Shown here in pieces: positions 17,201 through 61,246 of a stretch of 64,000 nucleotides of DNA. The position numbers and the translations under genes are program-made. The DNA comes from Macrostomum lignano (lineage: Eukaryota), in assembly GCA_002269645.1 (NCBI GenBank), contig NIVC01003732.1:15772-79771 (forward strand). Direction: 5' to 3'. The notes below the pieces were generated by a model. The model had not been told where the DNA came from and did no database searches. It saw nothing but the letters and a program-made list of their open reading frames with translations. Every line of letters begins with the position of its first letter. Within the stretch, counting starts at the first letter, position 1.

Positions 17201-17495
17201 CTCAAGGCAGAACTGAGGGCGATTCTCAAGGCAGAACTGAGGGCGATTCTCAAGGCGGAACTGAGGGCGATTTTCAAGGCAGAACTGAGGGCGATTCTCA
17301 AGGCAGAACTGAGGGCGATTCTCAAGGCAGAACTGAGGGCGATTCTCAAGGCAGAACTGAGGGCGATTCTAAAGGCAGAACTGAGGGCGAATCTCAAGGC
17401 AGAACTGAGGGCGATTCTCCTATGAGAACTGAGGGCGAATCTCCTATGGGAACTGAGGGCGAATCTCCTATGGGAACTGAGGGCGAATCTCTAAG
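14208..17495. repeat. 24-bp minisatellite (AGAACTGAGGGCGATTCTCAAGGC), about 136 copies
   Basis: Highly homogeneous array; source of the three 1100-aa ORFs. Confidence 0.98.
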
Positions 17496-17738
17496 GGATT
17501 ACCAGATTTCATGGATCTAGCACAAAATTAGCAAACATGAACGCAAAAAAGACATTATTAATAATTATACGACTAAAATTACTGGGTTTCAATAGCGCGG
17601 TGTTACGTAAATTACCAGATTTTAATAGGCATCATATTTTTCGCGAAAAAAAGCGAATAAAAAGAAATGTCAGATTTGACGCCAGTTTGAAGTGTCCCAG
17701 AATCCAATCAGTGATGAGGCGCCGCAGTCTATATAATT

Positions 17739-22130: not shown

Positions 22131-22744
22131 GATTTTAGCAAAAACGGCTCAACCGATTTTCTTCAAACTTGCACTGTTCGATCAGAAATTTTCCCGTGAC
22201 AGTACATGCATTGTGGCTAAGAAATTGCTTGATGCTAAAGGGATTAAATATTCGAAAAACATGCTTTTTTGCAAAGGTCAAGCAGCTCTTTCGACTTGAA
22301 ATGCATCGTAAGAATGTTAGCAGAAAAACTGACTGGTTGAATTCTGATTCTGAAATAGATTGCATCACAATACACTTTATTTATCGTCTGTGTACTGGCT
22401 GAATTTGACACTCAATTGAATTGCGTCACAGCTTTGAGTGTGAAAGCATAGCGCAGTACTGAATTTATATTATGTAACCATATTGTAAACTTTCATAGAC
22501 ACTGGTACTGACTTGCCTAAGAAATTGATTATGTCATAACTGCTTCGTGAGACTTTTTACTCTACCTGACTTGGTGTGAGTGTTGAATTATATAAGTGGT
22601 ACAACATCACTGATAACTTCGATGAGAGCTAGCCTAGAGCTGAACAGACCAGACTGCTAATGCAGCGACCTAGGTTCGAATCTAAGTAGTTTAAAAGTAG
22701 TAGTGTAAATTTTTTTATTAAAAGGTTTTATTAAAGGACTAAAT

Positions 22745-25700
22745 AAAAACACTTAGATTACTGCACTCGATAAGCCAAGGATTATTGCTATTAATAAACC
22801 AAGGACTACTGCACTCGATAAACCAAGGACTATTGCTCTTGGCAAACCAAGGATTACTGCACTCAAGAAGCCAAGGATTATTGCTATTAATAAACCAAGG
22901 ATTACTGCACTTGGAAAACCAAGGATTACTGCACTCGATAAACCAAGGACTATTGCTCTTGGCAAACCAAGGATTACTGCACTCAAGAAGCCAAGGATTA
23001 TTGCACTTGGAAAACCAAGGATTACTGCACTCGATAAACCAAGGACTATTGCTCTTGGCAAACCAAGGATTACTGCACTCAAGAAGCCAAGGATTATTGC
23101 TATTAATAAACCAAGGATTACTGCACTTGGAAAACCAAGGATTACTGCACTCGATAAACCAAGGACTATTGCTCTTGGCAAACCAAGGATTACTGCACTC
23201 AAGAAGCCAAGGATTATTGCACTTGGAAAACCAAGGATTACTGCACTCGATAAACCAAGGACTATTGCACTTGATAAACCAAGGAATATTGCACTTGATA
23301 GGCCAAGGATTACTGCACTTGATAAACCAAGGATTATTGCACTTGATAGGCCAAAGATTACTGCGCTTGATAAACCAAGGATTATTGCACTTGATAAACC
23401 AAGGATTATTGCACTTGATAAGCCAAGGATTACTGCGCTTGATAAACCAAGGATTATTGCACTTGATAAACAAAGGATTATTGCACTTGATAAACAAAGG
23501 ATTATTGCACTTGATAAACAAAGGATTATTGCACTTGATAAACCAAGGATTATTGCACTTGATAAGCCAAGGATTATTGCACTTGATAAGCCATGGATTA
23601 TTGCACTTGATAGTAAAGAATGTTGCACTTGATAAGCCAAGGATTAATGCACTGGATTATTCAAGGATTATTGATATTAATAAACCAAGGACTACTCCAC
23701 TCGATAAACCAAGGATTATTGCTCTTAATAAACCAAGGATTACTGCACTTGGAAAACTAAGGATTACTGCACTCGATAAACCAAAGACTATTGCACTTGA
23801 TAAACCAAGGATTATTGCACTTGATAGGCCAAGGATTACTGCACTTGATAAACCAAGGATTATTGCACTTGATAGGCCAAAAATTACTGCGCTTGATAAA
23901 CCAAGGATTATTGCACTTGATAAACCAAGGATTATTGCACTTGATAAGCCAAGGATTATTGCACTTGATAAACCAATGATTATTGCAGTTGATAAGCCAA
24001 GGATTATTGCATCTGATAAACTAAAGATTATTGCACTTGATAAACCAAGGATTATTGCACTTGATAAACAAAGGATTATTGCACTTGATAGGCCAAAGAT
24101 TACTGCGCTTGATAAACCAAGGATTATTGCACTTGATAAACCAAGGATTATTGCACTTGATAAGCCAAGGATTATTGCACTTGATAAACCAAGGGTTATT
24201 GCAGTTGATAAGCCAAGGATTATTGCATCTGATAAACCAAGGATTATTGCACTTGATAAACCAAGGATTATTGCACTTGATAAACCAAGGATTATTGCAC
24301 TTGATAAACCAAGGATTATTGCTCTTGGCAAACCAAGGATTACTGCACTCGATAAGCCAAGGATTATTGCTCTTAATAAACCAAGGATTACTGCACTTGG
24401 AAAACTAAGGATTACTGCACTCGATAAACTAAGGATTATTGCTCTTGGCAAACCAAGGATTATTGCACTTGATAGGCCAAGGATTACTGCACTTGATAAA
24501 CCAAGGATTATTGCACTTGATAAACCAAGGATTATTGCACTTGATAAGCCAAGGATTATTGCACTTGATAGGCCAAGGATTACTGCACTTGATAAACCAA
24601 GGATTATTGCACTTGATAAACCAAGGATTATTGCAGTTGATAAGCCAAGGATTATTGCACTTGATAAACAAAGGATTATTACACTTGATAAACCAAGGAT
24701 TATTGCACTTGATAAACCAAGGATTATTGCACTTGATAGGCCAAGGATTACTGCACTTGATAAACCAAGGATTATTGCACTTGATAGGCCAAAGATTACT
24801 GCGCTTGATAAACCAAGGATTATTGCAGTTGATAAGCCAAGGATTATTGCACTTGATAAACCAATGATTATTTCACTTGATAAACCAAGGATTATTGCAC
24901 TTGATAAACAAATATTGCACTTGATAAACCAAGGATTATTGCACCTGATAAGCCAAGGATTACTGCGCTAGATAAACCAAGGATTATTGCACTTAATAAA
25001 CCAAGGATTATTGCACTTAATAAACCAAGGATTATTGCACTTGATAAACCAAGGATTATTGCACTTGATAAACAAAGGATTATTGCACTTGATAAACCAA
25101 GGATTATTGCACTTTATAAGCCAAAGATTACTGCACTTGATAAACCAAGGATTATTGCACTTGATAAACCAAGGACTATTGCTCTTGGCAAACCAAGGAT
25201 TACTGCACTCAAGAAGCCAAGGATTATTGCTATTAATAAACCAAGGATTACTGCACTTGGAAAACCAAGGATTACTGCACTCGATAAACCAAGGACTATT
25301 GCTCTTGGCAAACCAAGGATTACTGCACTCAAGAAGCCAAGGATTATTGCACTTGGAAAACCAAGGATTACTGCACTCGATAAACCAAGGACTATTGCTC
25401 TTGGCAAACCAAGGATTACTGCACTCAAGAAGCCAAGGATTATTGCTATTAATAAACCAAGGATTACTGCACTTGGAAAACCAAGGATTACTGCACTCGA
25501 TAAACCAAGGACTATTGCTCTTGGCAAACCAAGGATTACTGCACTCAAGAAGCCAAGGATTATTGCACTTGGAAAACCAAGGATTACTGCACTCGATAAA
25601 CCAAGGACTATTGCACTTGATAAACCAAGGAATATTGCACTTGATAGGCCAAGGATTACTGCACTTGATAAACCAAGGATTATTGCACTTGATAGGCCAA

Positions 25701-27700
25701 AGATTACTGCGCTTGATAAACCAAGGATTATTGCACTTGATAAACCAAGGATTATTGCACTTGATAAGCCAAGGATTACTGCGCTTGATAAACCAAGGAT
25801 TATTGCACTTGATAAACAAAGGATTATTGCACTTGATAAACAAAGGATTATTGCACTTGATAAACAAAGGATTATTGCACTTGATAAACCAAGGATTATT
25901 GCACTTGATAAGCCAAGGATTATTGCACTTGATAAGCCATGGATTATTGCACTTGATAGTAAAGAATGTTGCACTTGATAAGCCAAGGATTAATGCACTG
26001 GATTATTCAAGGATTATTGATATTAATAAACCAAGGACTACTCCACTCGATAAACCAAGGATTATTGCTCTTAATAAACCAAGGATTACTGCACTTGGAA
26101 AACTAAGGATTACTGCACTCGATAAACCAAAGACTATTGCACTTGATAAACCAAGGATTATTGCACTTGATAGGCCAAGGATTACTGCACTTGATAAACC
26201 AAGGATTATTGCACTTGATAGGCCAAAAATTACTGCGCTTGATAAACCAAGGATTATTGCACTTGATAAACCAAGGATTATTGCACTTGATAAGCCAAGG
26301 ATTATTGCACTTGATAAACCAATGATTATTGCAGTTGATAAGCCAAGGATTATTGCATCTGATAAACCAAAGATTATTGCACTTGATAAACCAAGGATTA
26401 TTGCACTTGATAAACAAAGGATTATTGCACTTGATAGGCCAAAGATTACTGCGCTTGATAAACCAAGGATTATTGCACTTGATAAACCAAGGATTATTGC
26501 ACTTGATAAGCCAAGGATTATTGCACTTGATAAACCAAGGGTTATTGCAGTTGATAAGCCAAGGATTATTGCATCTGATAAACCAAGGATTATTGCACTT
26601 GATAAACCAAGGATTATTGCACTTGATAAACCAAGGATTATTGCACTTGATAAACCAAGGATTATTGCTCTTGGCAAACCAAGGATTACTGCACTCGATA
26701 AGCCAAGGATTATTGCTCTTAATAAACCAAGGATTACTGCACTTGGAAAACTAAGGATTACTGCACTCGATAAACTAAGGATTATTGCTCTTGGCAAACC
26801 AAGGATTATTGCACTTGATAGGCCAAGGATTACTGCACTTGATAAACCAAGGATTATTGCACTTGATAAACCAAGGATTATTGCACTTGATAAGCCAAGG
26901 ATTATTGCACTTGATAGGCCAAGGATTACTGCACTTGATAAACCAACCTGGATTATTGCACTTGATAAACCAAGGATTATTGCAGTTGATAAGCCAAGGA
27001 TTATTGCACTTGATAAACAAAGGATTATTACACTTGATAAACCAAGGATTATTGCACTTGATAAACCAAGGATTATTGCACTTGATAGGCCAAGGATTAC
27101 TGCACTTGATAAACCAAGGATTATTGCACTTGATAGGCCAAAGATTACTGCGCTTGATAAACCAAGGATTATTGCAGTTGATAAGCCAAGGATTATTGCA
27201 CTTGATAAACCAAGGATTATTTCACTTGATAAACCAAGGATTATTGCACTTGATAAACAAATATTGCACTTGATAAACCAAGGATTATTGCACCTGATAA
27301 GCCAAGGATTACTGCGCTAGATAAACCAAGGATTATTGCACTTAATAAACCAAGGATTATTGCACTTAATAAACCAAGGATTATTGCACTTGATAAACCA
27401 AGGATTATTGCACTTGATAAACAAAGGATTATTGCACTTGATAAACCAAGGATTATTGCACTTTATAAGCCAAAGATTACTGCACTTGATAAACCAAGGA
27501 TTATTGCACTTGATAAACCAAGGATTATTGCACTTGATTAATCAAGGATTATTGCTATTAATAAACCAAGGATTATTGCACTAGCTGAGAAGCTGATTAC
27601 TGCGCTGTCTAAAAAAGAGATTATTGCGCTCGCTGAGACGTGGATTGTTGCACAACCTGAGAAAGCGATTATTGCATTAGCGGAAGTAACATTTGCACTA
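22745..27700. repeat. 24-bp minisatellite (GATAAACCAAGGATTATTGCACTT), about 5 kb, containing a near-identical 2346-bp block duplication
   Basis: Variant patterns recur at +2346 (22820 vs 25166; ORFs 23657-24451 vs 26003-26797). Confidence 0.97.
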
Positions 27701-36863: not shown

Positions 36864-38270
36864 ATGGAAGACGCTCGGACGGGACCGTTGCCAAGCTCGA
36901 ATTCGGGTTACTCGAGCTCCTATTCGAGGTCGCACGGTCGTCGCCGGGAGAGGCAGTTCGATGCGGCATCGTTGGAGTCGCCACAGCTGCAGCAGGAGCA
37001 GGAAGCGGATGCCAGATCCTACGGTACCAGCAATCGGAGGTCGAAGTCTGGACTGCGTGCTCTGCAGGAGCTGGTGTCGGACGCCAGGACGATGAACTGC
37101 GATGCAGCTGGCTCTCCGTTGCCCAGCCGGCTACCGAAACCGCTGACGCAGAAACTGCCGAGGCATCAGCAGCAGAGGGCCAGCCATACTGAGGATGACT
37201 TTGCCAAGTATCTGGGATTCGCCGACGCAGAAGGTTCGACTGACGATGGAAACCGGTCAAGACGGCAGCGTTCGACTCAGAATCAGTCGTCAATGGTGGT
37301 GAGTCTGTCTGCGTGTACTTTTTAGCTGTTGACACCGGTGATGTCGAGACCTAATTAAAAAGACGTTGGATCAATGCTAAATGTCTGCATGAATTAAAAA
37401 AGCAATAGAATCTGGCGGAATAGGTTTGAAGTTTGATGTCACGTGACCGAAGGAAATTGCGTCAGTAAACCTTGAGTAAACATTGAAATTCTACTAAACA
37501 TCTGAAATTCTACTAAATATCTAATAATCCGCAAACGTTTTAAACTGGTATTGTTCATCTGATATCCTCATGTTATATAGATAGGTTAACTGTTTAGCTA
37601 TGTCCCCGTACAACAATCCGACGTCGCACCGACCTCTGAACCGACGTCGTACGACGTCTATGTAACATTACGTGTTTCCTATTGGTCGGACGTCGGGCCG
37701 ACGTCGAAGTCGTAGTCCAAAAATTTATTTCGCGCTTCTTTAACATTTATTTTCGCGGGATGAACTGGCAAGCAATACTGTTATGCTTAATTTAATTATT
37801 TAAGGCGAATAACGTGAATTAAGGCGAATTTAATTTTTCGACTACGACTTCGACGTCAGCCCGACGTCCGACCAATAGGAAACACGTAATGTTACATAGA
37901 CGTCGTACGACGTCGGTCAGATACGTCGGATTGTTGTTCGGGGTCCCTTTCTGGCTCGAATTTAAAGTTAATTCGATCTTAACAAAACGAGCTTCACTCA
38001 AATCTGAGCTATCAAATATATATGTCTCAACACCAAGTAACGCAGGTAGATAGGTAGCTTCGACTCGACATCATTGGACATTAAATTTAAAACAGGACAG
38101 GTTAAAAATGACATTCCCAACTATCGAACAACCCCAAATATGAATCGACGGTCAACAGTCAAGATTATCTGTATAGTTGCTACGCGATAAAAATGTTTGA
38201 CAGGACCGGCTCAGCTGTGCCGATGGCGACAGCGGCGGCCTGGAAGGTCCCACGCGCCGACACCAAGTCA

Positions 38271-38316
<46 letters not shown>

Positions 38317-40858
38317 CCAGCAGCAGCAGCAGCAGCACCAGCACCAGCACCAGCACCAGCAGCAACTGTTTCTGGCACCATCAACTTCAGCCCATCTTTC
38401 AGAAGAAGACTTTGCTGAGGAAGAGAAGCTTTGCCAGCTGGTTGGCTCAATGCTGGACCAAGCGGCCAGGGTGGAGCAGCAGAGCTGTCTGTACCGGGGT
38501 CAGCGGGCCAACCTCTGGGACGCCGAAGCGATCGCGGCATCGATGTATCCGTTTGTCAACGAATTCGGTGACAGAGTGTTTCGGCTGCAATTTCGAACCG
38601 CGTTTCCCTTTAACCAGCCGGAGATGCTCGAGATGTTTAACCTGCTGTCCGGGAACTTCTCTGTGAGAAGCTTGCATAATTTGGGTCGGTTTTTATTTGT
38701 ATATACTACTGCTTGTCAGTAGCCTTCATATCGTTCGGCGCGTGCGCTCATAAAAATTGTGCGCAAAACAAACTCAACGCGGTGACTCCATGGGTGCTTG
38801 AAATTTCTATCTGTACTTGTGATTTTGTTCCCTTCAATCAGCTTCCTTCATCAAAAATAAGCATCAAATTCAGCTAACAACTCCCGTTCACCCGGCCTGC
38901 AGTCAGGTAGCGACACGGAGCTGCTGCTGCGTCAGGGCCTCAGCGACCTGCGGTCGATCCACCTGCAGATGCGGCTGTTCCTGCACACCGAGGCCGCCCT
39001 TGCCGAGGTTGATGACGCGGCTCTGTCCAGCCTGCTGCTGGCATTCGCCGAGCAGGTGGACCGAGACCTCCGCTCCGTGTCGGCCGGGCCCGGCTGCGGT
39101 CAGTTCCCCAGCTTCTCCAAGTATGCCCGTCGACGAGCCGCGGCGCTGGCGGCTGCGGTTGGTCGCTTCGCCCAGACGGCCGAGCGGAGGCGCCGGCTGG
39201 TGCTTGGCCGGATGCAAGGCCTGGCAACCACCGTCATGGGCTTCGTGGCCTGCAGCCCCAGCGACGGAGTGGCCGATGGCGGCCTACGCAAGGCGGTGGT
39301 CGCCTTGTTCGACGACATGCTGGCCTGCTTTGCGTGCCTCGGCAGCAGCTCCGGAGCGGCTGCTGGAAGCGGCGGCGGTGGAGGCGGCGGCTGCGAGTCC
39401 AGACCGGCCAGTCCGCCACTGCCTGTGGAAAGGCTGAGCTATGACGATGGCGACCACTGCACCAGGGGCTTCGGTCGAGGCGACGCTCCGTCTCTGCAGC
39501 CGCTGCCCTCCCTGATGGAGCCGCATGACGAAGAGGCGCCTTCAATTGAGCCTGTTTCGGAGAACGAAGGCGCTGACGACGAGGACCTCCGCGACCACAG
39601 CTGGGGCGCTCGCGGAGTCGGTGCTGGCGAACACAGCCCTGGAGTGGCCATCGAGTCCGCTAGCGACTCTTTGCTTCAACCAGAAGAGGCCTTTTCGATT
39701 CAGTTCATGGAGCGACTGGAGGGTTTGCTGTCCAGCTTTATGCACAACGAGCGCGTTGACAACCAGGGCTTCAAGACGGCCTTCAATGCGCTGTACGACT
39801 GGTGGCGTCGGTACAGCGGCGACGGCGGCGCGAATCGCAGCTGGGAGCGCCGGGTGACGACCATCAAAGAGAAGTTCGACCGAGCTCAGAAGCTGCGAGC
39901 CGAGAGCAACGGTGTGAAGCGTTTGTACAGCGAGTCGGAGACCACCTGGGATCTCATTGAAGTGGCCAAGCTGATGATGGCCTCCGAGGATCGAACAACT
40001 TTTCTAGTCGAAACGCAGACGGCAGCGGAGCATCGGGAGCCGACGCTGAGCCTCGTAGACTCGACGCTCGCCACGCTGTACCTCTACCAGCTGGCGCAGG
40101 ACGCCAGCGTGCTGTCTACGCGACTGCGCGCCGAAATTCAGCGCCTGATTCACCGGCTGACGGACTGCGGCCCCGTGCCGATGCTCTGCCTGCTGCGCCT
40201 GCGCCTCCTGTACATGCGTGCTCGGCAGTACTCTGACCTGCTGCGCGCTCATCCTCAGGGCTGCCTCATCCTTGAGCTAGCTCAGGTCCATCGAGTGCTT
40301 AACCGAGACGCCTATCCTGACGGTGTCATTACCTGCCCGCTCAACTTGACTTTTTGCGTGCCGCTCAACGACTACAAGAAGTTCTGCCAGCACGTCAAAG
40401 AGCTGCGCGTTCTATCGTTCGAAGCTCGCGCCCCGGTGACGGAGAAAACCGCTACTCTGATGAAGACCAGCAGCCTGAGGAAGATTGAAAGATGCTGTCA
40501 GTGCAGCATCGACGTCCTGCCGCCAGCCGGCTCCGGGGCCGCCTCGGACGCGGCCACCTGCGGCGCCACCGCCAGTTCGCCATCGGCCGAGACCGCCCTG
40601 ACGGCCGGCACCAGACGCAAGCCGCAGCTCATCGTTGGCGGACTTCGCTCAAGCTTCGGCCTGGTGGTTCGGCCGGATCAAAGCCACGGCCGGGCCAATG
40701 CAGCAATGCGGATGATTTGCGACATTGTGGGGCCGGCTGGCATCGGCGACCGAGTGAAGTACCGCAGCTTCCACCTGAGCCTGCTGCTTCCTCACAACTA
40801 CAAACCGCTGCAGGTGTTTGCCGAGACGTCAAGGCCGCTTGCATGTAGCGACTCGTGA
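36864..40858 (+). CDS. 949-aa protein with a low-complexity N-terminus and a degenerate STAR/GSG (QUA1-KH-QUA2)-like C-terminal domain. Exons 36864-37298, 38204-38662, 38903-40858.
   Basis: Three GC-rich open exons joined by phase-0 GT-AG introns (435/459/1956 nt). The C-terminal segments resemble Quaking/GLD-1 as recalled (see finding). The gene model is stronger than the domain call. Confidence 0.78.
37604..37943. mobile_element. Foldback/MITE-like element with about 100-bp inverted arms in intron 1 of the STAR-like gene
   Basis: Left arm CCCCGTACAACAATCCGACGT...ACCGACGTCGTACGACGTCTATGTAACATTACGTGTTTCCTATTGGTCGGACGTCGGG.. matches the reverse complement of about 37832-37943 nearly perfectly apart from one short internal indel. 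Confidence 0.88.
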
Positions 40859-41699
40859 GCCGTCTGTCCGAGTTCCAGCCCGCGTTATTGAACTTTTCCT
40901 ATCATTAATATTATTATTATTATTATTTCGTACCTTTTTCAATTTCGTATTCGCTTCAAAGGTCGACATAGCTAAGTACTACACAAGCAGGATGTCGCAG
41001 AAGTATAACAGTTCAACTTTAAACCGTAACAACATTTTGACCAATACAGTACAGGAGTACAGGCACAAATATTTTTACTATGTTAGCGTACACAAAATAG
41101 TCAACCTCCGAGGCTTCTATTTTTAGTAAAAAGTTACTTTTTACTGTAACCAGGTGCCATGGCTGCCCGCGGCACCATATTTTAGAAAAGTGTATCGTCA
41201 ACTTTTTTTCTCGATATTTTGCTCTACCCGTTAAGCATTTCGAATAGATTTTTTAGTTAAATTTGCTTGTACCAGCTGTCGTTTTGAGTGACACCAGTCA
41301 ATAATAAGCGTGTAAGTCAGCTTACTATAGCTAGCGCGGTTATTATTTAAGTCAAGACTTCTGCTGTCTCATGGTTTCTGGCTCTGTCTTGGGACTGTAA
41401 GGCAGGTATGCGCTAGAACGAAACGGTCTTGCAAACTGCTATGACGCACAGGATAGATTCTATATATTTAGGGGTCGCGCAAGACTGCGACAATCCACCT
41501 AATATATCCGATAGGATGCACATTGCAATGCATTACTAAACGTACACAATCACACTCAAGGGCAAGCAGTGTTACACTTCACAGGACAAAACTCCCCCTA
41601 AATCGAACCAAATTAGTGACTAAAATTCGAGTAGCAAAAATTCGAGTACAAAACATTACAATTCAAACGAAACCACAATATGACTCACACAAAATTGAA

Positions 41700-44650
41700 C
41701 ATTTGCAAATTAAAAGACACGAAAACGGACTTAAAACTGGGCCACATAGAAATCAGGCTGCCTTCTGTCCCTCCCAGACCGCCGAGGCTGGACAGCCTCC
41801 GGCTCCTCGAGCAGCTCCTCCCAGTCCTGCCGCAGGTCACCGTCGCCGTCCGGGGGACTGCAGTCGGGAGACGGAGTCGGCTCAAGCGGCGGGCCCGCCA
41901 GCTACGGCCGCCGCGGGGTGAGACCTTCAGGCGGTTGTGGTGCACCACAGAGCTTGGCCGCCGCCCGGGGCGCTTGAAGATGCGGTAGGTGACGGGCCCC
42001 AGCTTCTTCAGGACTCTGTAGGGCCCCAGCTTCTCCAGGACTCTGTAGGGCCCCAGCTTCTCCAGGACTCTGTAGGGCCCCAGCTTCTCCAGGACTCTGT
42101 AGGGCCCCAGCTTCTCCAGGACTCTGTAGGGCCCCAGCTTCTCCAGGACTCTGTAGGGCCCCAGCTTCTCCAGGACTCTGTAGGGCCCCAGCTTCTCCAG
42201 GACTCTGTAGGGCCCCAGCTTCTCCAGGACTCTGTAGGGCCCCAGCTTCTCCAGGACTCTGTAGGGCCCCAGCTTCTCCAGGACTCTGTAGGGCCCCAGC
42301 TTCTCCAGGACTCTGTAGGGCCCCAGCTTCTCCAGGACTCTGTAGGGCCCCAGCTTCTCCAGGACTCTGTAGGGCCCCAGCTTCTCCAGGACTCTGTAGG
42401 GCCCCAGCTTCTCCAGGACTCTGTAGGGCCCCGCTGTCGCAGCGCCTTGCTCTGGCCCTTCCGCATCGCCGCATTGCTGAGCAGCCCCAGCTAGCCCGCC
42501 CGAAGCGGCGTGAAGTTGGCGCGCTTGTTGCACTGCCGCTTCCTTGATAACTGGGACGCCAACAGGCGCTCGTGCACCAGCTGCACACTGGCCCGCCCTG
42601 CTGCTCTCCGGTGGTGGGCAGACATCGGTATCCGGGGGTCGCGACTGTGCAGCACTGCGTACGGCGACAGATTCGGGGTGCTGTGGACACGGACAAGTTG
42701 TTGCCCAGATGACGAACGGCAGGCAGTGCGCCCAACGATCTTGCTGCTCCGTGCAGTAGGCAGCCAGCATGTCACCGAGCGTACGGTTGAACCGCTCGAC
42801 CACCGGCTTGCCGCTCGGGTGGAACGGTGTCATCCTGGTCTAGCGAATGTCCAGCAGGAGGTACAACTCGCAGAAAACCTCGCTCTCGAACTGGCGGCCT
42901 TTGTCGGAGTTGATGACCACCGGTGACCCATGCCGCAGAGTGACGCTGAGCAGCAGCGCCTGGGCCACAGTCTTCACTACGATTTTGCTGACTGGGACCG
43001 CCTTGACCCACGTGGAAAACACATCAGTGAAGCAGATGATGTACTTGAGGCCGGTATCTGTGGCTGGCAGGGGCCCCTTGATGTCCACCTGCACGATCTC
43101 TCAGAGCAGTGACTGCATTGAGTTGCCTGCAGCGGCGCCCGCTGATGCTGATGAGGCACCTTGCGATGCTGGCAGTTCTCGCAGCTGCTCACCCAGTGCT
43201 GCACGTCCTCCTTGATGCTCGGCCACCAGCCCTTGTTGTCGATCCTTGACAGAATGCGCTCGGGCCCGAGGTGTCCGCTCGCTGGGTCATCGTGCGCCAG
43301 CCTGAGCAGCTCCTTACGGAGCTGCAACGGAATGACAGGCTCGCCGCAGCGCCTGATGATGCCGCAGATGCCGCCGTCGTCGATCTTCAGCCGCTCAGCA
43401 GCCATGATGCCTGCTGCCTCGACCGCTGGCCTGCCTTGCCGCGGTGTCTGCCCTGTTAGGAGCTTCCGAATGGCCTTCTGTGCGTCAAGGATGTCGCTAG
43501 TGGTTCAGGCAGGCGCCATCCGAATCGCCGCTGCCCTGCTCAGCGCATCCGAAACGAACTTATAGTCCTCACCAGGTCGGTAAAGTAGCTTGAAGTTTAC
43601 TTCCTAGAGGCTGGTGATCCATCGGGCAAGACGGCCTTCAGGCTCCTTGGTGTTCAGCAGACCCTGCAGCGGCTTGTGATCAGTAAAGACCAACACGCCG
43701 CTCGCCGAGGCCAGGTAGTTTCGAAAGTGCTTCATCGCCCACACGATCGCCAGCAGCTCCCTGTGAGTCGTTGAATTGTTGCGCTCGGCTTTGTTAAGCA
43801 CTCTCGAGGCGTAGGCGACTGGGCACTCAACACGTTCGTGGAGCTCACTAAGGACGCCAGCGATGGCGACGCCGCTGCTGTCGCAGGTCAGCTGGAACTC
43901 TTTGGAGAAATCAGGCAGCCCGATGAGAAAGTCAGCGCTGCTTTCAGCTTCTGCAGGGCTCGCTCGCACTCCGTCAAGAAGAACCGCCATCCCTTTTGAG
44001 TGGCCTGGTGGAGCGGGCTGGCGATTCTGGCGAAGTGCGGGACGAACCGGCGATAGAACCCCAGCATGTCGACCAGCCGGCGGCCGTCCTCTGCGCAGTT
44101 TTTGTCGGGGTGGCCTTTATTGCGCTTATTGCCTAAGTCGGACGGATGCTGAAATCACATGACCTAAGTATTCGACTTCCCTAAGTAGCAGAAGCAGCTC
44201 TTGCACTTGTTGAGCTTGAGACCGGCCGACTGGAGCCTCTCCAGGACTTTCTCGAGCGTCTTTACATGGCTGTCGAACGTCGAGCTGAACAGGATCAGAT
44301 CGTCCATGTAGGTGAGCACCTCCGTCCAGTTCATGCCGCACATTTTCAGGTCCATGAGACGCTGGAAGGTTGCCGGCGTGTTGCATAATCCGAACCCCAG
44401 CTTTTTGTACTGCATCAGGCCCTGGGTGCTGTAGAAAGCGGTCTTCTCGCGGTCCTGCTCCCTGATCTCCACCTGAAGATCCAGCGTGCTGAACCAGCTA
44501 CTCCCCGTCAGCGCGTCCAAGGCAGTACGGATGCGGACGTCGTTGTTTTTCTCACGAACAACAAGGAGGTTGCTCACCCACGGGCTGCACGACGGCTCGA
44601 TAATGCCGTGACGCCGCATCTCGCTGATCTTGTCGTCGTCCACCTGCGGC
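41700..44650 (-). mobile_element. Decayed Gypsy (Ty3) pol: RT, RNase H, integrase
   Basis: RT with PSCSPWVS, WFSTLDL, KTAFYST and YMDD; RNase H LTCDSSG..VAYASR..ELLAIVWA..FTDHKPL; integrase HDDPASGHLG..CENCQ, QVDIKGPLP, NSDKGRQFES, VERFNRTL. Multiple frameshifts and deletions. Confidence 0.93.
41994..42432 (-). repeat. 27-bp in-frame tandem repeat (about 16 copies) encoding GPYRVLEKL inside the integrase C-terminus
   Basis: Direct reading; followed by the native GPVTYRI. Confidence 0.95.
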
Positions 44651-45194
44651 CGAAAGCTGAGAGGGACCTCAGTTTAGTAATGTATTGCAATGTACGAGCT
44701 ACATTCTATCGGATATATGAGGTGGGGTTGTCGCAGTCTATTATTAATCCTGGGCGTCTTAGCAGTTTGAAAGACCGTTTCGTTCTAGCGCAAATCTGCC
44801 ATACATTGGTGGCAGCGGTGAATCAGTCAGTCAGTCAGTCAGCCTAGTTTTGCTAAATCATCGACAAGCAACTCAGCGCACTCTTACCTTCTAAGTTCTC
44901 TGGCTCTGCAGATTCAGTCATCCATACCGTAACGCACAATGAATTAAAACCACCAAGTAAAATTTTTGCCATATAGCTACTGGTCTTTAAGATAAATTCA
45001 AGGACTAAATTGGAAGTAAAGCTTGTAGGAATATTAATTTTTGTTATTTGTATAGTATTTTTGTTCAATTTCCTAAGTTCAAAACCTAAAAAGTTTTAGG
45101 TTTAACATTGAAATAAGACCATAGATAAATACTAGGGAAATAAGTAAAGCAATCGTCACTGATACCAAACTATCTACTCTAATACTTTGTAGCA

Positions 45195-52969: not shown

Positions 52970-55900
52970 ATGATGGATTCAAAGCGCAAGAAAGCACCCC
53001 GTCCAAAGTCGACTGATCCATCGAGCAGGCAGCTCTGGTTGCTGGCCATGAAGGAGGGCAAAACTGGAACTGGTGAGCTGACTAATAAAAAGTTATCCAT
53101 TTTGTTGTCAAACACCCACTACTGAAAATTCCTAAGATTGATTCCAACAATAAAATGTCAGTGTAATATAAATAATACTGTAAGGTCAGTAAACGTCTTG
53201 AGCACTTTAGGGAGAAGCGAAACTTTAGTTAGAAAATTGGATCCTCTCTGATATGTGTCTCTGGTGTCTAATGAGTGTTTCTGGTGTCTAATGAGTCTCT
53301 GGTCAATGAGTGTCTCTGGTGTCTAATGAGTGTCTTTGGTGTCTAATGAGTGTGTCTTTGGTGTCTAATGAGTGTGTCTGGTGTCTAATGAGTGTGTCTT
53401 TGGTGTCTAATGAGTGTTTCTGGTGTCTAATGAGTGTCTCTGGTGTCTAATGAGTGTCTTTGGTGCCTAATAAGTGTTTCTGGTGTCTAATGAGTGTCTC
53501 TGGTGTCTAATGAGTGTGTCTTTGGTGTCTAATGAGTGTCTCTGGTGTCTAATGAGTGTGTCTTTGGTGTCTAATGAGTGTTTCTGGTGTCTAATGAGTG
53601 TCTCTGGTGTATAGTAAGTGTCTCTGGTGTCTAATTGGTGTCTCTGGTGTCTAATGAGTGTTTCTGGTGTCTAATGAGTGTCTCTGGTGTCTAATGAGTG
53701 TCTCTGGTGTCTAATGAGTGTCTCTGGTGTCTAATGAGTGTCTATGGTGTCTAATGAGTGTCTCTGGTGTATAGTAAGTGTCTCTGGTGTCTAATTGGCG
53801 TCTCTGGTGTCTAATGAGTGTCTCTGGTGTCTAATTGGTGTCTCTGATTCCAAAAAGATGTCTCTGGTGCCTATCGAGAGCCCCGAATTATCCTAAAAGA
53901 TAAAATCTAAGATAAGAGCTGTTTATGCGTGTGTTTATTTAAAAAAGATACCAGATAGAAATTATATTATAAAGTTTACAAAATGCAAAAAATGTTGTGC
54001 TCAAAAACCGCCACAGGTGCGAACAAAGGCTCACTAGGCCAGCAGTTGGATCCAACCGGTTTCACCAACTTGAAACTCAGCGGCCAAAAAGATGTTGGCT
54101 ATTTGAGTACGTCGCACTACCTCAGACAGGTGGCCGGTACAGAGAAGGTCACCCCGCGCCCAGACTCCGCCGCTGCAGGCAAAGCCTCTGGCGGACTCAC
54201 CGGCCGACCGAACTACAAGTCTGCCGAGGAGTACTATGATGAGGTCATCGCTTTGAAACGGGTGAGCTCCAGCAGATAGTCTCTAGATCCCACTTCTTAG
54301 TGTCCTTCAGTCTCTAGATCCCACTTCCCACTGTCCATCAGACAGTCTCTAGATCCCGCTTTCCAGTGTCCTTCAGTCTCTAGATCCCACTTCTTAGTGT
54401 CCTTCAGTCTCTAGATCCCACTTCTTAGTGTCCTTCAGTCTCTAGATCCCACTTCCCACTGTCCATCAGACAGTCTCTAGATCCCACTTCCCAGTGTCCA
54501 TCAGTCTCTAGATCCCACTTCCCAGTGTCCTTTCAGAAAGTCTCTAGATCCCGCTTTCCAGTGTCCTTCAGTCTCTAGATCCCACTTCCCAGTGTCCTTC
54601 AGTCTCTAGATCCCACTTCCCACTTCCCAGTGTCCATCAGTCTCTAGATCCCACTTCCCACTGTCCATCAGACAGTCTCTAGATCTCACTTCCCATTGTC
54701 CATCAGTCTCTAGATCCCACTTCTCAGTGTCCTTTCAGAAAGTCTCCAGATCCCACTTCCCAGTGTCCACCAGAAAGTCTCCAGATCCCACTTCCCAGTG
54801 TCCACCAGAAAGTCTCTAGATCCCACTTCCCAGTGTCCTTCAGACAGTCTCTAGATCCCACTTCCCAGTGTCCTTCAGACAGTCTCTTCTAGATCCCACT
54901 TCCAAATGTCCTTGTGAATCTTGCGTCCTAAAAAACACAAATAAATTAAAATTTAAACACAGGAACTCAAAGCCCTCCGCGCGGAGATGAGCTCGATGAA
55001 GTCAAAGAACCGTCGCCTAGAAGAAGACTACCAGAAGCGCGAGAAGCAGCTGGAGAGTCTGTTCGATCCGACAAAAAACGCCGAACTCAGACGGGCTCTG
55101 GCTGATAAAAACGGCGAATCCGCCCTGGTAGTGCAGAGTTTGAAGCAGCGAATCTTCAAACTCGAACAGCAGCTGAGAGACAAAGAGTCAGCTTTAAACA
55201 AACTTCAAAGCGATATGAAAGTGACAAAGACTGCCGAAATGAAGACCCAATTAGAAGTGCTGTACAAGGAGATTGTGAGGCTGCGCAGCGCCAATCCAGC
55301 GGACGTGCTGTACTCAAATGAGCAGCCAGGTGGAGCCGGCATTGATCAGGTAGGTTTTACCGATATGTTGTGTAAATAACTTTAATAATTCTAGGTTAAC
55401 CAAATTGATGCATTGTTGCGGAGTTATTTTAAATTGTCAGCTCTTAACAAGCGCCATTTTTAAGTCCCACGGCACTCTTTCGGAGTGGAGAGAGTGACGC
55501 CCTGCTTTGGTGTCATCTGACACTCCGATTTCGGCGCCTCTTGACACCTGACACTTTTGGCGCCTGCAGATGTTTTAATTGCCTGCCAACTGACAATATA
55601 TTACGGCGTTATTTTACCGCCGACTTAGCGACATCTGACGCCCTGTTCTAGCGCCAACTGACAACCTATTCTAATGATATCTGATACCCTATTTTAGCGC
55701 CATCTGACATCCTTTTCTAGCGCCATCTGACACCCTATTCTAGCGCCATTTGAGACCCTATTTAGCGCCATCTGACACCCTATTCTAGCGCCAGCTGAAA
55801 CCCTATTCTAGCGCCATCTGACACCCTATTCTAGCGCCAGCTGAAACCCTATTCTAGCGCCATCTGACACTCTATTCTAGCGCGATCTGACACCCTATTC

Positions 55901-58900
55901 TAGCGCCATCTGAAACCCTATTCTAGCGCGATCTGACACCCTATTCTAGCGCCATCTGAAACCCTATTTTAGCGCCATCTGACACCCTTATTCTAGCGCC
56001 ATCTGACACCCTTATTCTAGCGCCATCTGACACCCTTATTCTAGCGCCATCTGACACCCTATTCTAGCGCCGCCGACTTTCTCGACACCCCGGCCTCTAT
56101 TTAACCGCACCCATTATTTTCGCGCCTCTCGACACTCCAGGAGCAGATGCCGAAAAAGACCGCTCAAAAGTTGGACGCCCTGACAGCGACGCTGCGCAAG
56201 GTGACGGACCAGAAGAACGCCCTGGCCGCCGAGAATGCCCAGCTGAAAAAATCTGAAGCTTCGCTGCAGGAACAGCTGGACGAGTTGGAAGGCACCACAG
56301 CGATTCCGGGTTAGCTTTTTATTTCTACAGAATTTTACTGCTGACTTTATTAGCTGCTGCAGTAGCGTATGGCATCTGAAAATTAATAAGAAAAAATATT
56401 TATACAGAAAAGTAGGGTTTAGGATCGGGTGAAAGATTCAGGATAGGTACAAGAACCAGGATGAGGTGTGCAAGATTCAAGATGTGATGTACAAGTTTTA
56501 GGATTACATATACAAGGTTCTGTACAAGGTGTACAAGATTCAGAACTAGGTGTACGAAATTCAGGATGAGGTGTACAATATTCAGGATGAAGTGTACAAT
56601 ATTCAGGATGAGGTGTACAAGATACAGGGTAAGGTGTACAAGATTTAGGATGAGGTGTACAATATTCAGGATGAAGTGTACAAGATTCAGGATGAGGTGT
56701 ACAAGATTCAGGATGAGGTGTTCAAGATTTAGGATGAGGTGTACAATATTCAGGATGAAGTGTACAAGATTCAGGATGAAGTGTACAAGATTCAGGATGA
56801 GGTGTACAAGATTCAGGATGAGGTGTTCAAGATTTAGGATGAGGTGTACAATATTCAGGATGAAGTGTACAAGATTCAGGATGAGGTGTACAAGATACAG
56901 GGTAAGGTGTACAAGATTCAGGATGAGGTGTACAAGATTCAGGATGAGGTGTAAAAAAATTAGTGAGTTGTACAGGATTTAGGATAAGGTGTACAGGATT
57001 CGGAAAGGGGTGTACAAGATTCAGATTGAATAAATATTTAGAATCATCTAGAGAATTCAATAATGAGTACTAGTGAAAAGGCAGCTTGACTCAAAATAAA
57101 CATTAATCATCAACATCGTCTGTTGCAGAATCCTACCGCGATATGAACCGCAATCAGTTGCTAAGCAAGATTCGAACACTCGAACAAGAGAACGACCGTC
57201 TTCGAGTGGCTCCCATCGGCAGCGAAGATATTGTTAAAAGTGAGACAACAGGTTTTAAGACATTGTGTTGGTCTATTTTAGGAATGATTTATGAAAATAA
57301 TTTTTTTGATTTATAGGAGTAAAATAGATGAGACCTGGACAGAAAGCATAACTTTTTAATGGAGAATGGCTGACACTTAGAGTGACACGGAGAGTGACAC
57401 GGAGAGTGACACGGAGAGTGACACGGGGAGCGACACGGAGAGTGACACGGAGTGACACGGAGAGTGACACGGGGAGCGACACGGAGAGTGACACGGAGTG
57501 ACACGGAGAGTGACACGGGGAGCGACACGGAGAGTGACACGGAGAGTGACACGGAGAGTGACACGGAGAGTGACTCGGAGAGTGACACAGAGAGTGACAC
57601 GGAGGGTGATGCAGAGAGTGACACAGAGAGTGACACGGAGGGTGACATGGAGAGTGACGCAGAGAGTGACACGGAGAGTGACACGGAGAGTGACACAGAG
57701 AGTGACACGGAAAGTGACACGGAGAGTGACACGGAGAGTGACACGGAGAGTGACACGGAGAGTGACACGGAGAGTGACACGGAGAGTGACACTTAGAGCG
57801 TTTTGGAGAGTGACGCAGAGAGTGACATGAAGATTGAAACAGAGAGTGACAGGAAGAGTGACGCAGAGTTCGTGCTAAGAGTGAGTGGAATGGTGAGTAC
57901 AATATTTTATTCGAATCCCAAACCCAGGCAAAATATCCCTAACTGGTAACGTGCGCGAGAAACTTGAGCTGCTGGATCGCCGGGAAACCGAGCTGCTAAG
58001 CGAACTGGCCGCTAGAACGGACGCTAACAAGCGTCTGATGGAGGAGCGGGACTCTTACAAACTGCAGCTGCAGGAGGCAAAGTGAGTGTGCCATTAATTA
58101 TCGGCTTGTCAATGTGCATTGGCGATAGGGAGGCTTGTCAATGTACATTTAAAATAGAGACTTGTCATTGCACATTGGAGATAGGGAGGCTTGTCAATGT
58201 ACATTGGCGATAGGGAGGCTTGTCAATGTACATTGGAGATAGGGAGGCTTGTCAATGTACATTGGCGATAGGGAGGCTTGTCAATTTACATAGGAGATAG
58301 AGGCTTGGCATTGTACAGTATGGAAGTAGTGAGGCTTGTCAATGTACATTGGCGATAGGGAGGCTTGTCAATTTACATAGGAGATAGAGGCTTGGCATTG
58401 TACAGTATGGAAGTAGTGAGGCTTGTCAATGTACATTGCAGTAAGAAATTTTAAACTGAATGGTTTCTAAATAAAAATTCACTATTCTATACAGACGCGA
58501 CATCGAACGGTTAAACTTTGAAAACGCCGGTCTATCTAAAGAGGTCGATCAACTGCGCGCCTCCGGAGGCGGCCCTGGCGCTGGCGCCGCCGCTTTTAGA
58601 GCTCCGTCGCCGTCGCCGCGACGCAACGACTTCGGCAAGGAGGCGTCGCCACCGCCTAGGGATGCTAATAAACGAGGCGCAGTTCGACAGGACAGGTGAG
58701 AGACGTAAATTGAGATACCAGATGTACATGAAGGAGGCTTGTGAATCAACATTGAGATAGTACAATCAACTATGAGATAGTGAGGCTTGTCAATGTACAT
58801 TGGCGATAGAGAGGCTTGTCAATGTACATTGGCGATAGAGAGGCTTGTCAATGTACATTGGCGATAGAGAGGCTTGTCAATGTACATTGGCGATAGAGAG

Positions 58901-61246
58901 GCTTGTCAATGTACGAGCGTACATTGGTGATAAGGAGGTTTGTGAATGTACATTTGAGATAGGGAGGCTTGTCAATGTACATCAGAGATAAGAAGGCTTC
59001 TCAATGTACATAGGAGATAGTGAGGGTTGTCAACATCGACAATAGTTAATAAATTAAATATAAAACCAGGGACCTGGGTCTGTGGAACTTAACGAACTCG
59101 TACTCAATTACCTTTGATAAAATGTATAAATTATCAATAGAAATCGAGCTAAAAAAAGTACAACTACAACTTACTATAGTTTCACTTAATGAGGTTTCGT
59201 ATTGTGTACAATAATTTTTTGCTTTGAAGAAATCTTTCCACCTTTTTTCTCTTTCAGAAATCGAATGCAAGAAGATGCTGTAAGTTCATAATATTTTTAA
59301 AAATCCATTTTCTGACGTCTATTCTCTGGCCTTCCTTTCTTGGTGGACAACCCTGCCTCTTGGTGGACAACCCTGTCTCTTGGTGGACAACCCTGTCTCT
59401 TGGTGGAAAACCCTGTCTCTTGGTGGACAACCCTGTCTCTTTTTGGAAAACCCTGTCTCTTGGCGGACAACCCTCTCTTGGTGGGCGCCCCTGTCTCTTG
59501 GTGGACAACCCTGTCTCTTGGTGGACAACCCTCTCTTGGTGGGCGCCCCTGTTTCTTGGTGGACAACCCTGTCTCTTGGTGGACAACCCTGTCTCTTGGT
59601 GGACAACCCTGCTCTTGGCAGACAACCCTGTCTCTTGTTGGACAACCCTATCTCTTGTTGGAAAACCCTGTCTCTTGGCGGACAACCCTGTCTCTTGGCG
59701 GACAACCCCGTCTCTTGGTGGATAACCCTGTCTCTTGGTGGACAACCCTGTCTCTTAGTGGACAACCCTGTCTCTTGGTGGACACCCTGTCTCTTGGTGG
59801 ACACCCTGTCTCTTGTTGGAAAACCCTGTCTCTTGTTGGAAAACCCTGTCTCTTGTAAAACCCTGTCTATTGGTGGACAACTCGGTCTGTCTGTGGGCCC
59901 CCTTAATTCTCTAAGGCTCTCACATTAATACACATTAATCACATTCCTCCAGGCCGTGACAAAGCTGCAGTCGGTACTCCGAGGTCACAAAGCTCGACAA
60001 GATTATTTGAATCGCGACAGACAGCAGCGGCAGCAGCGCCAAGAGTCCCCGACGCCACCAAAACCGCAGCAACGACGACAGGCCATGGACAGCAATAGTG
60101 ATTACGACAGGGACAGCTTTGATAGTGGGAGATTCCGGAACAGACGTACCAGTGGCAGCCGGAACCGCGACGACTTTGGCAAGGAAGACGACATCCCGCA
60201 ACGCCGACCGCGCCCAAGAAGCAATTCGAGGAGCCAGCAAGGCTCCGGAGACGATGCCGCCTCCTCCTACAGCAGGCGCAGCGGCACTGGCAGTGCTACA
60301 GGTGAGCTGGAGTTTCTAGTGCTCGCTAGCGCCCCTTGGTGCTGGTGCCCCTTGGTGCTGGCGCCCCTTGGTGCTGGCGCCCCTTGGTGCTGGCGCCCCT
60401 TGGTGCTGGCGCCCCTTGGTGCTGGCGCCCTTGGTGCTAAAGCCCCTTGGTGCTAAAGCCCCTTGGTGCTAAAGCCCCTTGGTGCTAAAGCCCCTTGGTG
60501 CTAAAGCCCCTTGGTGCTGGCGCCCCTTGGTGCTGGCGCCCCTTGGTGCTGGCGCCCCTTGGTGCTGGCGCTCCTTGGTGCTGGCGCCCTAAATTACGCC
60601 AAAGGCTTTTGTATAGCATTTTAAATGAGGATTTTCAAGAATTTAATAGTTCCACTAAAACACACTAAAAAGAAAAGGGCAGCTGAAATTGCTTTGAAAA
60701 AGTTTACAACGTGATAGCTTTGAGAGTTGTAATTTGAATGCGCAAAAGATAAGATATTGGGAATTTAGTGTGCTAAAGTACTTTTGCCTACATAAGTTTT
60801 AAATCGGAAGTGATAAATATATACTTCAAAACAAAAAAACTGCGCCATATGAAACCTACCAAGACAAAAATAAGTGTAATATAACAAATAAATTGAGACA
60901 GATACTAAGATAACTTCATGTACACTTATGAGTATGATAATTGTTTTTAAACTTGTGTGTTCTTACTGGTTTATAACGTAATTATTTCTAAGAAAGTTTT
61001 TTTACAGAAAATTTAGCGATTTTAACAAATCAAAAAATATGGTGGTAAGAACGTGTATAGTAGTATTTTAAAGCATATGAATTAGTTTTTTCGCAATGGT
61101 AGCTAGTTTATACTTATCTCTCCGCAGTTCAAGCGTCCACAGGTCGTCGCAGCAGCAATCGGCAAGGACGACCATTCGATGCCGGCTCCAGCCGAAATCG
61201 TCGCTCGATAGACGACAATGACGACGACGACGTTCTAGTTGACTAA
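52970..61246 (+). CDS. IQCE: IQ domain-containing protein E (IQCE), 619 aa. Exons 52970-53072, 54017-54261, 54963-55349, 56141-56309, 57129-57239, 57928-58081, 58495-58695, 59258-59279, 59953-60301, 61128-61246.
   Basis: Ten exons (1860 nt) join in frame through GT-AG introns. [70 protein letters not shown] parallels vertebrate IQCE as recalled (YREKEDMYDEIIELKK..RRLEEENSRKDRQIEQLLDP..INGLKQRILKLEQQCKEKDGTISKLQTDMK). IQ motif [14 protein letters not shown]; acidic C-terminus [10 protein letters not shown]. Confidence 0.92.
53246..53860. repeat. 20-bp minisatellite (TCTGGTGTCTAATGAGTGTC), IQCE intron 1
   Basis: Direct reading. Confidence 0.93.
54278..54910. repeat. 31/35-bp minisatellite (AGTCTCTAGATCCCACTTCCCAGTGTCCTTC), IQCE intron 2
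   Basis: Direct reading. Confidence 0.93.
55660..56070. repeat. 23-bp minisatellite (TCTAGCGCCATCTGACACCCTAT), IQCE intron 3
   Basis: Direct reading. Confidence 0.92.
56420..57020. repeat. 21-bp minisatellite (AGGATGAGGTGTACAAGATTC), IQCE intron 4
   Basis: Direct reading. Confidence 0.92.
57375..57790. repeat. 12-bp repeat (GAGAGTGACACG), IQCE intron 5
   Basis: Direct reading. Confidence 0.93.
58105..58440. repeat. 29-30-bp minisatellite (GAGGCTTGTCAATGTACATTGGCGATAG[G]), IQCE intron 6
   Basis: Direct reading. Confidence 0.9.
58720..59040. repeat. Same 29-bp family as intron 6, IQCE intron 7
   Basis: GAGGCTTG at 58811 and 58840. Confidence 0.9.
59320..59870. repeat. 20-bp minisatellite (TGGTGGACAACCCTGTCTCT), IQCE intron 8; reverse complement of the array inside the 50.1-50.8 kb MITE
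   Basis: Direct reading. Confidence 0.93.
60325..60590. repeat. 16-bp minisatellite (GCGCCCCTTGGTGCTG), IQCE intron 9
   Basis: GCGCC at 60361, 60377 and 60393. Confidence 0.92.

Follow-up and report, generated by a model that had tools for sequence, protein, structure and literature searches.

Results

A three-exon gene with a constrained C-terminal domain

The stretch of DNA analysed here (hereafter named the window) comprises 64,000 nucleotides of contig NIVC01003732.1 of Macrostomum lignano and carries, on its plus strand, a gene whose 949-aa product ends in a conserved alpha/beta domain. The last 270 aa of this protein had been taken in the original prediction for a degenerate STAR (QUA1-KH-QUA2) domain devoid of the GXXG loop. 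As detailed below, structure models and profile comparisons weakly suggest a KH-like fold for the core of this domain (aa 798-911), whereas the STAR-specific features are not supported.

The gene model was obtained by tblastn and splice modelling and consists of three exons. Exon 1 (36864-37298, aa 1-145), for which conserved columns were also used, begins with the ATG start codon, encodes a disordered S/R/Q-rich N-terminus that includes the conserved motif DDFAKYLG, and ends at a GTGAGT donor. Exon 2 (38204-38662, aa 146-298) is bounded by an AG acceptor and a GTGAGA donor and encodes a polyglutamine (polyQ) stretch followed by the conserved FGDRVFRLQFRTAFPFNQPEMLEMFNLL block. Exon 3 (38903-40858) encodes aa 299-949 plus the stop codon, and comprises a first helical region, an acidic disordered linker, a second helical region and the C-terminal alpha/beta domain. 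All the exon borders are GT/AG and in phase 0, and the three-exon layout is also present at the paralogue locus L001.

Only three clusters were returned when 5.8 billion proteins were searched with a word index. One contains BOX15_Mlig014050g2 from M. lignano (910 aa, 71% identity to the window protein), with g1 and g3 in its 90% cluster. The second is a homologue from a Logan assembly (979 aa, 54% identity), encoded by an uninterrupted open reading frame (ORF) on a 3.4-kb transcript-like contig, and the third is the M. lignano fragment A0A1I8HC83 (426 aa), which matches exons 1-3 with 94-98% identity. No homologue beyond these three clusters was found in a filter-free HMMER profile search with the exon-3 alignment against 1.84 billion representative proteins. 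Two homologue searches with C-terminal queries missed even the known homologues and were therefore treated as uninformative. As far as the available data go, the protein family is confined to Macrostomum and, as judged by sequence comparison, the window gene has an older paralogue group (Mlig014050). No publication came up when the literature was searched for the identifier Mlig014050.

The ratio of nonsynonymous to synonymous substitutions (dN/dS, Nei-Gojobori method) against the paralogue was 0.17 overall. It ranged from 0.06 to 0.18 over the C-terminal domain and reached 0.37-0.64 only in two disordered stretches. The gene is real and under selection; its C-terminal domain is constrained, and purifying selection acts on the C-terminal region. 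An origin as a transposon or a pseudogene was rejected on the strength of the conserved introns, the intact ORF and dN/dS ratios well under 1 in two comparisons.

Some peculiarities of the locus and its relatives were also recorded. Exon 2 contains a CAG array (38273-38364, 30.7 copies) that codes for a polyQ/His-Gln tract; this tract differs in length and sequence from that of the near-identical fragment A0A1I8HC83 and is missing from the paralogue Mlig014050. Within intron 1, the segment 37604-37943 includes a 94-nt inverted repeat (arms at 37640-37733 and 37824-37917, 96% complementary) flanked by a second pair of 21 nt, and it resembles a miniature inverted-repeat transposable element or a foldback element. 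UniRef names the fragment A0A1I8HC83 'Protein phosphatase', probably through automatic mis-annotation, as no Pfam domain is recorded for it and its sequence does not resemble a phosphatase.

Predicted architecture of the C-terminal domain

Two AlphaFold2 (AF2) models, one covering 651 aa and the other the last 270 aa, were each computed from a three-sequence alignment. The mean predicted local distance difference test score (pLDDT) was 36.7 for the 651-aa model and 44.3 for the 270-aa model, and the predicted template modelling score was 0.23 and 0.39, respectively. Both models concur on the secondary structure; since they share network and sequences, they do not count as independent evidence. 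The modelled region is all-helical up to aa ~763. This long helical part includes a predicted helix-turn-helix (40049-40162, aa 681-718; AF2 H2-16 and H20-39) that holds the strings YLYQLAQD and LRAEIQRL.

The C-terminal domain follows, with the predicted order strand (LNLTF), helix (LNDYKKFCQHV), strand, two helices (the second being TSSLRKIERCC), strand, a 44-aa loop, strand, helix (ANAAMRMICDIV), coil and a final strand (SFHLSLL). The first two elements make up a predicted beta-alpha unit (40340-40396, aa 778-796; AF2 E99-103 and H107-117). The models are most confident over the stretch that runs from RVLSFEARAP to ANAAMRMICDIV (block pLDDT values of 58-78). It reads beta-alpha-alpha-beta-[44-aa loop]-beta-alpha, which at the low confidence of these models is the order of a type I KH domain.

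This stretch corresponds to the KH-like core (40400-40741, aa 798-911), defined by AF2 secondary structure, Foldseek, hhalign and HMMER. Its putative elements are beta1 (RVLSFEARAP), alpha1 (EKTATL), the MKTS tetrapeptide, alpha2 (SSLRKIERCC), beta2 (CSIDVL), the loop, beta' (SFGLVVRP) and alpha' (ANAAMRMICDIV). The M-K-T-S residues (40460-40471, aa 818-821) occupy the GXXG position in the global hhalign alignment. In the alignment of the homologues the three sequences read LMKTS, LMKTN and LTKAS here; glycine is present in none of them. The variable loop between beta2 and beta' (40520-40651, aa 838-881) has 44 residues, is A/S/T/G-rich, and is predicted to be disordered (AF2 pLDDT 25-29). It is poorly conserved, its length differs among the homologues, and its dN/dS was 0.15-0.64, the comparison with L002 giving 0.64 against 0.13-0.14 in the flanks. 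After the core, the C-terminal tail (40742-40855, aa 912-949) is conserved with invariant columns and holds IGDRVKYRSFHLSLL; it is predicted, with low confidence, as coil plus the strand SFHLSLL (AF2 E241-247), with no helix. The C-terminal domain is conserved, and its KH-like core has an isoelectric point (pI) of 9.3, compared with 6.4 for the whole protein.

All the strings quoted in the original prediction (YLYQLAQD..LRAEIQRL, AYPDGV..LTFCVPLNDYKKF, MKTS, SLRKIERCCQCSIDV, GLVVRPDQSHGRA and IVGPAGIGDRVKYRSFHLSLL) are present in the last exon, in the order and frame given there, and 679 aa precede the last 270 aa, for which about 680 had been stated.

When the AF2 models were compared with the PDB using Foldseek, KH domains were prominent among the best matches, all of them with E-values of at least 0.4. 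For the 270-aa model, 7 of the top 50 matches were KH domains, including ranks 1-4 (IGF2BP3 KH1-2, IMP1 KH1-2, SF1 and ZBP1 KH3-4), with Nova-2 KH3 and Msl5 shortly below. For the 651-aa model the number rose to 16 of the top 50, with Msl5 at rank 1 and target-normalised template modelling scores (TM-scores) of 0.56-0.64 for FUBP1, hnRNP K KH3 and PCBP KH3.

Comparison of the core with KH profiles

A KH profile of 12 sequences was assembled from eight classical KH domains, SF1 and Sam68, together with the PDB-verified KH-QUA2 regions of QKI and GLD-1. Against this profile, the core (aa 798-911) with its loop intact obtained an hhalign score of 19.2 (P=0.011). With the loop cut out in eight alternative ways the scores were 19.7-26.6 (P=1.8e-4 to 3.7e-3). 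Column shuffles of the core (300 in number) gave a mean of 10.3 and a maximum of 17.5, and the reversed core gave 11.7. Likewise, 192 windows of other ORFs, taken from the window and from locus L001, gave a mean of 8.7 and a maximum of 17.4. When windows were slid along the rest of the protein family the scores stayed at 6-12, and only those over the proposed core reached 14-18.6. Control profiles of RRM, PII and S6 scored 8-12 against the core (P=0.2-0.7), and the positive control, STAR against classical KH, scored 45.5. An RRM-like or PII-like reading of the core was rejected on these background scores, at the level of sequence; this rejection does not extend to the fold.

The two halves of the core, alpha2-beta2 and beta'-alpha', each scored ~18 alone against the KH profile. 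Both alpha2-beta2 and alpha' fell on their KH counterparts; the isolated second half placed the LVVRP strand on beta2 and not on beta'. In the alignment of the core, hhalign placed SSLRKIERCCQCSIDV on KH alpha2-beta2, FGLVVRPD on beta' and GRANAAMRMICDIV on alpha'. With a hidden Markov model (HMM) of the same 12 sequences, run in HMMER with the filters off, each of nine constructs obtained a higher score (6.3-13.8 bits) than any of the 336 decoys (at most 3.0 bits). The 12-sequence profile, which includes STAR and SF1 members, outscored a classical-only profile, and the hhalign signal of a STAR-only profile was marginal at most.

In the global hhalign alignment, M-K-T-(gap) falls on G-x-x-G, in agreement with the earlier proposal that MKTS replaces the GPRG loop, and the ARAP of RVLSFEARAP falls on the 'v.iP' end of beta1. 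The distance from the ARAP proline to the GXXG position is eight residues, the spacing of classical KH domains. Hence RVLSFEARAP is preferred as beta1 over LTFCVPLNDYKKF, to which the original prediction had assigned this strand; the segment LTFCVPL.. is more likely an extra N-terminal beta-alpha unit, a more economical arrangement than beta1 followed by a 20-residue insert. Of the KH blocks proposed originally, the register of alpha2, beta2, beta' and alpha' thus stands, weakly, on the AF2 order, Foldseek and the custom hhalign and HMMER comparisons, while the placement of beta1 does not. Taken together, the AF2 order, the Foldseek matches and hhalign with the custom profile represent three weak, concordant signals for a type I KH-like core.

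Standard searches and the case for a different alpha/beta fold

The main alternative is a C-terminal alpha/beta domain that is specific to the lineage and unrelated to KH, its fold being either new or ferredoxin-like (beta-alpha-beta-beta-alpha-beta). According to this explanation, the eye, AF2 and a permissive home-made profile would all have caught a generic amphipathic helix/strand pattern that resembles KH. We consider it a serious possibility that nonetheless falls short of being probable.

The observations that speak for it are, to a large extent, those that weigh against a KH-like core. Searches with curated profiles and against PDB sequences were all negative. At E<=10, neither KH_1 nor KH-I_KHDC4-BBP, STAR_dimer or any Quaking family was reported by Pfam for the 949-aa protein, its last 270 aa or two homologues, and eight constructs lacking the loop and/or the putative insert gave no KH or STAR family either. 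Human QKI, used as positive control, was recognised by STAR_dimer (PF16544, 4.3e-24), KH-I_KHDC4-BBP (PF22675, 3e-19) and KH_1 (2e-5); the sequence used is identical to PDB 4jvh over residues 7-214. No match at E<=10 was obtained by phmmer or by profile search against all PDB sequences. Both AF2 models are of low confidence and derive from three-sequence alignments, so that the folds may be wrong. ACT, PII, S6 and other ferredoxin-like folds appeared in Foldseek at E-values similar to those of the KH matches, every one of which was 0.4 or above. The predicted extra C-terminal strand (E241-247) also suits the strand and helix order of the ferredoxin-like fold. In addition, the HMM signal is fragile: an 8-sequence classical-only HMM and a 4-sequence STAR-only HMM gave no signal, the scores of the latter being at the level of the decoys. 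The loop cut made initially was by chance the best of the eight, and the classical KH, SF1 and Sam68 sequences of the profile were entered by hand, although Pfam called each of them KH_1 or KH-I_KHDC4-BBP.

Against a non-KH fold, the RRM, PII and S6 profiles stayed at background with the core, whereas the KH profile rose above it, and did so with each half of the core separately. Moreover, KH domains are estimated to make up a very small share of the PDB and yet account for 7 of the 50 best Foldseek matches with the 270-aa model and for 16 with the 651-aa model. A KH or STAR match by profile or structure had been set beforehand as the test of the original prediction. The outcome was divided: the standard profile searches were negative, and the structural comparison, with KH-rich top matches at E-values of at least 0.4, was not cleanly so.

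STAR-specific features of the C-terminal region

It was also considered whether the last 270 aa are a true, degenerate STAR/GSG domain (QUA1-KH-QUA2) of Quaking/GLD-1-like descent, with an insert in the GXXG region, that would dimerise through QUA1 and serve as a pseudo-RNA-binding or dominant-negative partner. This explanation, which we regard as improbable, draws on weak blocks that are collinear with those of STAR proteins, on the presence of the SF1 and Msl5 KH-QUA2 structures among the Foldseek matches, and on the better performance of the 12-sequence profile with STAR and SF1 members relative to the classical-only one. In contrast, QKI, GLD-1 and Sam68 structures were not among the top 50 Foldseek matches, and the STAR-only profiles gave no signal (HMM) or a marginal one (hhalign).

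Comparison of the whole region with QKI and GLD-1 did not exceed what is expected by chance. BLASTP against the QKI STAR domain gave a best E-value of 1.4, with non-collinear fragments. When the region was aligned to QKI and GLD-1 with BLOSUM62, both by Smith-Waterman and semi-globally, the scores lay within the distribution of 500 shuffles (z -0.1 to 1.8). An hhalign comparison of the three Macrostomum sequences with QKI plus GLD-1 gave a probability of 0.5% over 16 columns only (P=0.11); the sole segment aligned was PLNLTFCVPLNDYKKF with QLQEKLYVPVKEYPDF, and the likeness of CVPLNDYKKF to YVPVKEYPDF, at that same P=0.11, is the motif that can be quoted in favour of STAR descent. In these alignments the likeness of the whole region to STAR is no better than chance.

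The flanking elements were compared separately. The best QUA1-like site in the protein, found by hhalign against the QUA1 of QKI and GLD-1, is YLYQLAQDASVLS, aligned with YLMQLMNDKKLMS. It lies N-terminal to the KH-like core in the predicted helix hairpin, as a STAR domain would have it. The match covers 13 columns and the first helix only (P=0.027-0.067), with the second helix unaligned. Between it and the core lie ~60 residues that include additional helices, where QKI has ~30. The tail after alpha', which had been put forward as QUA2, scored 5.2 by hhalign against a four-sequence QUA2 alignment (P=0.79), less than other parts of the protein, and the stretch is predicted as coil and strand instead of helix. 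The conserved variable loop of STAR proteins (RGKGSMRDK...NWEHL) is absent, its place being taken by the non-conserved A/S/T/G-rich loop of variable length. STAR_dimer and KH-I_KHDC4-BBP, both of which match QKI strongly, do not match the Macrostomum protein, and its QUA1 likeness is marginal. As far as profile comparison can tell, membership of the STAR family fails on every defining feature tested, namely QUA1, the maxi-KH with GPRG, QUA2 and the variable loop. The suggestion of a dominant-negative STAR partner loses its footing as well, because it depends on a QUA1 dimer interface that the analysis does not support. For the elaboration of this idea, in which the Macrostomum family would keep a hidden module of STAR origin, made of a QUA1-like hairpin and a KH without GXXG, that heterodimerises through QUA1 with Quaking/GLD-1-type regulators of the flatworm and titrates them as a natural dominant-negative, perhaps in the germline, we see very little chance indeed.

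Surroundings of the gene in the window

The DNA of the window is repeat-rich, with GC-rich exons within AT-rich surroundings. Just downstream of the gene, on the minus strand, pieces of a Ty3/gypsy-type pol extend over 41688-44673. They comprise RVT_1 (44167-44673), RNase H (43607-44116), an integrase zinc-binding domain (42980-43504) and an integrase C-terminal/SH3 domain (41688-42839). The element looks broken, since the pol pieces occur in separate ORF segments. The integrase C-terminal ORF contains a 27-nt tandem array (41994-42432, 16.3 copies, 99% matching) that produces in-frame GPYRVLEKL repeats, an odd expansion.

Further away, an ORF segment on the minus strand (8855-10012) encodes an MSP (major sperm protein) domain (Pfam Motile_Sperm, 6e-10) and probably belongs, as an exon, to a neighbouring gene. 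On the plus strand, 54957-55376 and 59929-60453 comprise a coiled-coil-like ORF segment and a segment in which Pfam recognises an IQ calmodulin-binding motif (IQ, 5e-5); they may be exons of another downstream gene. Repetitive open stretches in multiple frames were found at 272-1278, 4566-5660, 6632-7099, 14036-17517, 22742-27317 and 56403-57938. From their translations they are read as large tandem-repeat or satellite blocks that take up a big share of the window, and such blocks would account for its swings in GC content and skew.

Discussion

The reading that we favour is that aa 798-911 form a highly diverged, GXXG-less type I KH-like module within a lineage-specific protein, with a non-canonical role, mainly in packing or protein interaction. 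We give this reading roughly an even chance of being correct. As predicted, the protein has a disordered N-terminus and two helical regions with an acidic linker in between, and it ends in an alpha/beta domain that is conserved and basic. In this domain, a beta-alpha-alpha-beta-beta-alpha core with M-K-T-S in the place of GXXG and a disordered 44-residue loop between beta2 and beta' would be preceded by an additional beta-alpha unit and followed by the conserved tail.

In canonical KH domains the GXXG loop docks the RNA backbone. Binding of single-stranded RNA in the canonical groove would have been lost in the Macrostomum domain, by analogy with the behaviour of other GXXG-less KH modules. 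In the few solved KH domains without GXXG, the missing loop is associated with a loss of nucleic-acid binding and with extensive protein-protein contacts inside the molecule; binding is also impaired when the KH loop is mutated to GDDG (PMC3413153). Similarly, KH1 of KHNYN has no GxxG, and the di-KH domain of this protein showed no detectable RNA binding (PMC11997328). On this analogy, the domain would more likely serve for packing or protein interaction than for canonical binding of single-stranded RNA, and this might be its main function in a lineage-specific scaffold protein. The basic character of the core, with its pI well above that of the whole protein, may leave room for non-canonical contact with nucleic acids.

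Other KH modules without the glycine loop are KH1 of Pno1/Dim2 and of Krr1, and the KHDC3/OOEP family. With the GXXG-less type I KH domains, such as KH1 of KHNYN and N4BP1 (PMC11997328), the Macrostomum core would share the beta-alpha-alpha-beta-beta-alpha order and the lack of a glycine loop between alpha1 and alpha2, the fold itself being weakly supported. Such modules bind nucleic acids in a non-canonical way or no longer at all, and serve protein contacts within or between molecules (PMC3413153, PMC11997328). The Macrostomum domain differs from these modules in that no sequence relationship to them was found by Pfam or PDB searches. Moreover, it is a single domain at the C-terminus, with a disordered variable loop of 44 aa and an additional beta-alpha unit on its N-terminal side, and the protein that carries it was found only in Macrostomum. 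The resemblance to classical type I KH domains (Nova, hnRNP K, PCBP, IMP/ZBP1 and FUBP/KSRP) lies in the best target-normalised TM-scores of the Foldseek searches (up to 0.56-0.64) and in the spacing of the elements, which fits once the variable loop is removed. Unlike them, the Macrostomum domain has no GXXG, no 'I-G-x-x-G-x-x-I' and no 'T-G-a-x-I', carries CCQC in place of xTGa, and is not seen by Pfam KH_1. What it has in common with STAR/GSG proteins (Quaking, GLD-1, Sam68 and SF1/BBP) is the long loop between beta2 and beta', the register of alpha2-beta2 and beta'-alpha', and an upstream helix hairpin of the YLxQL type. Unlike them, it lacks a GPRG loop, a GKGSMRD-type loop, a QUA2 helix and a STAR_dimer match, it has the classical spacing between beta1 and the GXXG position, and ~680 unrelated residues lie upstream. 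The domain would thus be a very divergent and architecturally unusual variant of the established GXXG-less kind of KH, to the extent that these weak signals allow.

Even if true, this reading would not change the understanding of KH or STAR proteins, since KH modules devoid of GXXG have been described before. Should the fold not be confirmed, what remains is a conserved lineage-specific domain. If it is confirmed, the gene would provide an example of a KH domain that has drifted too far for Pfam to recognise and has lost the loop that grips RNA, within a genus-restricted flatworm protein. Such a finding would help in the annotation of the 'orphan' genes of M. lignano, a model of regeneration and of the germline, and would represent a case of domain decay and re-use.

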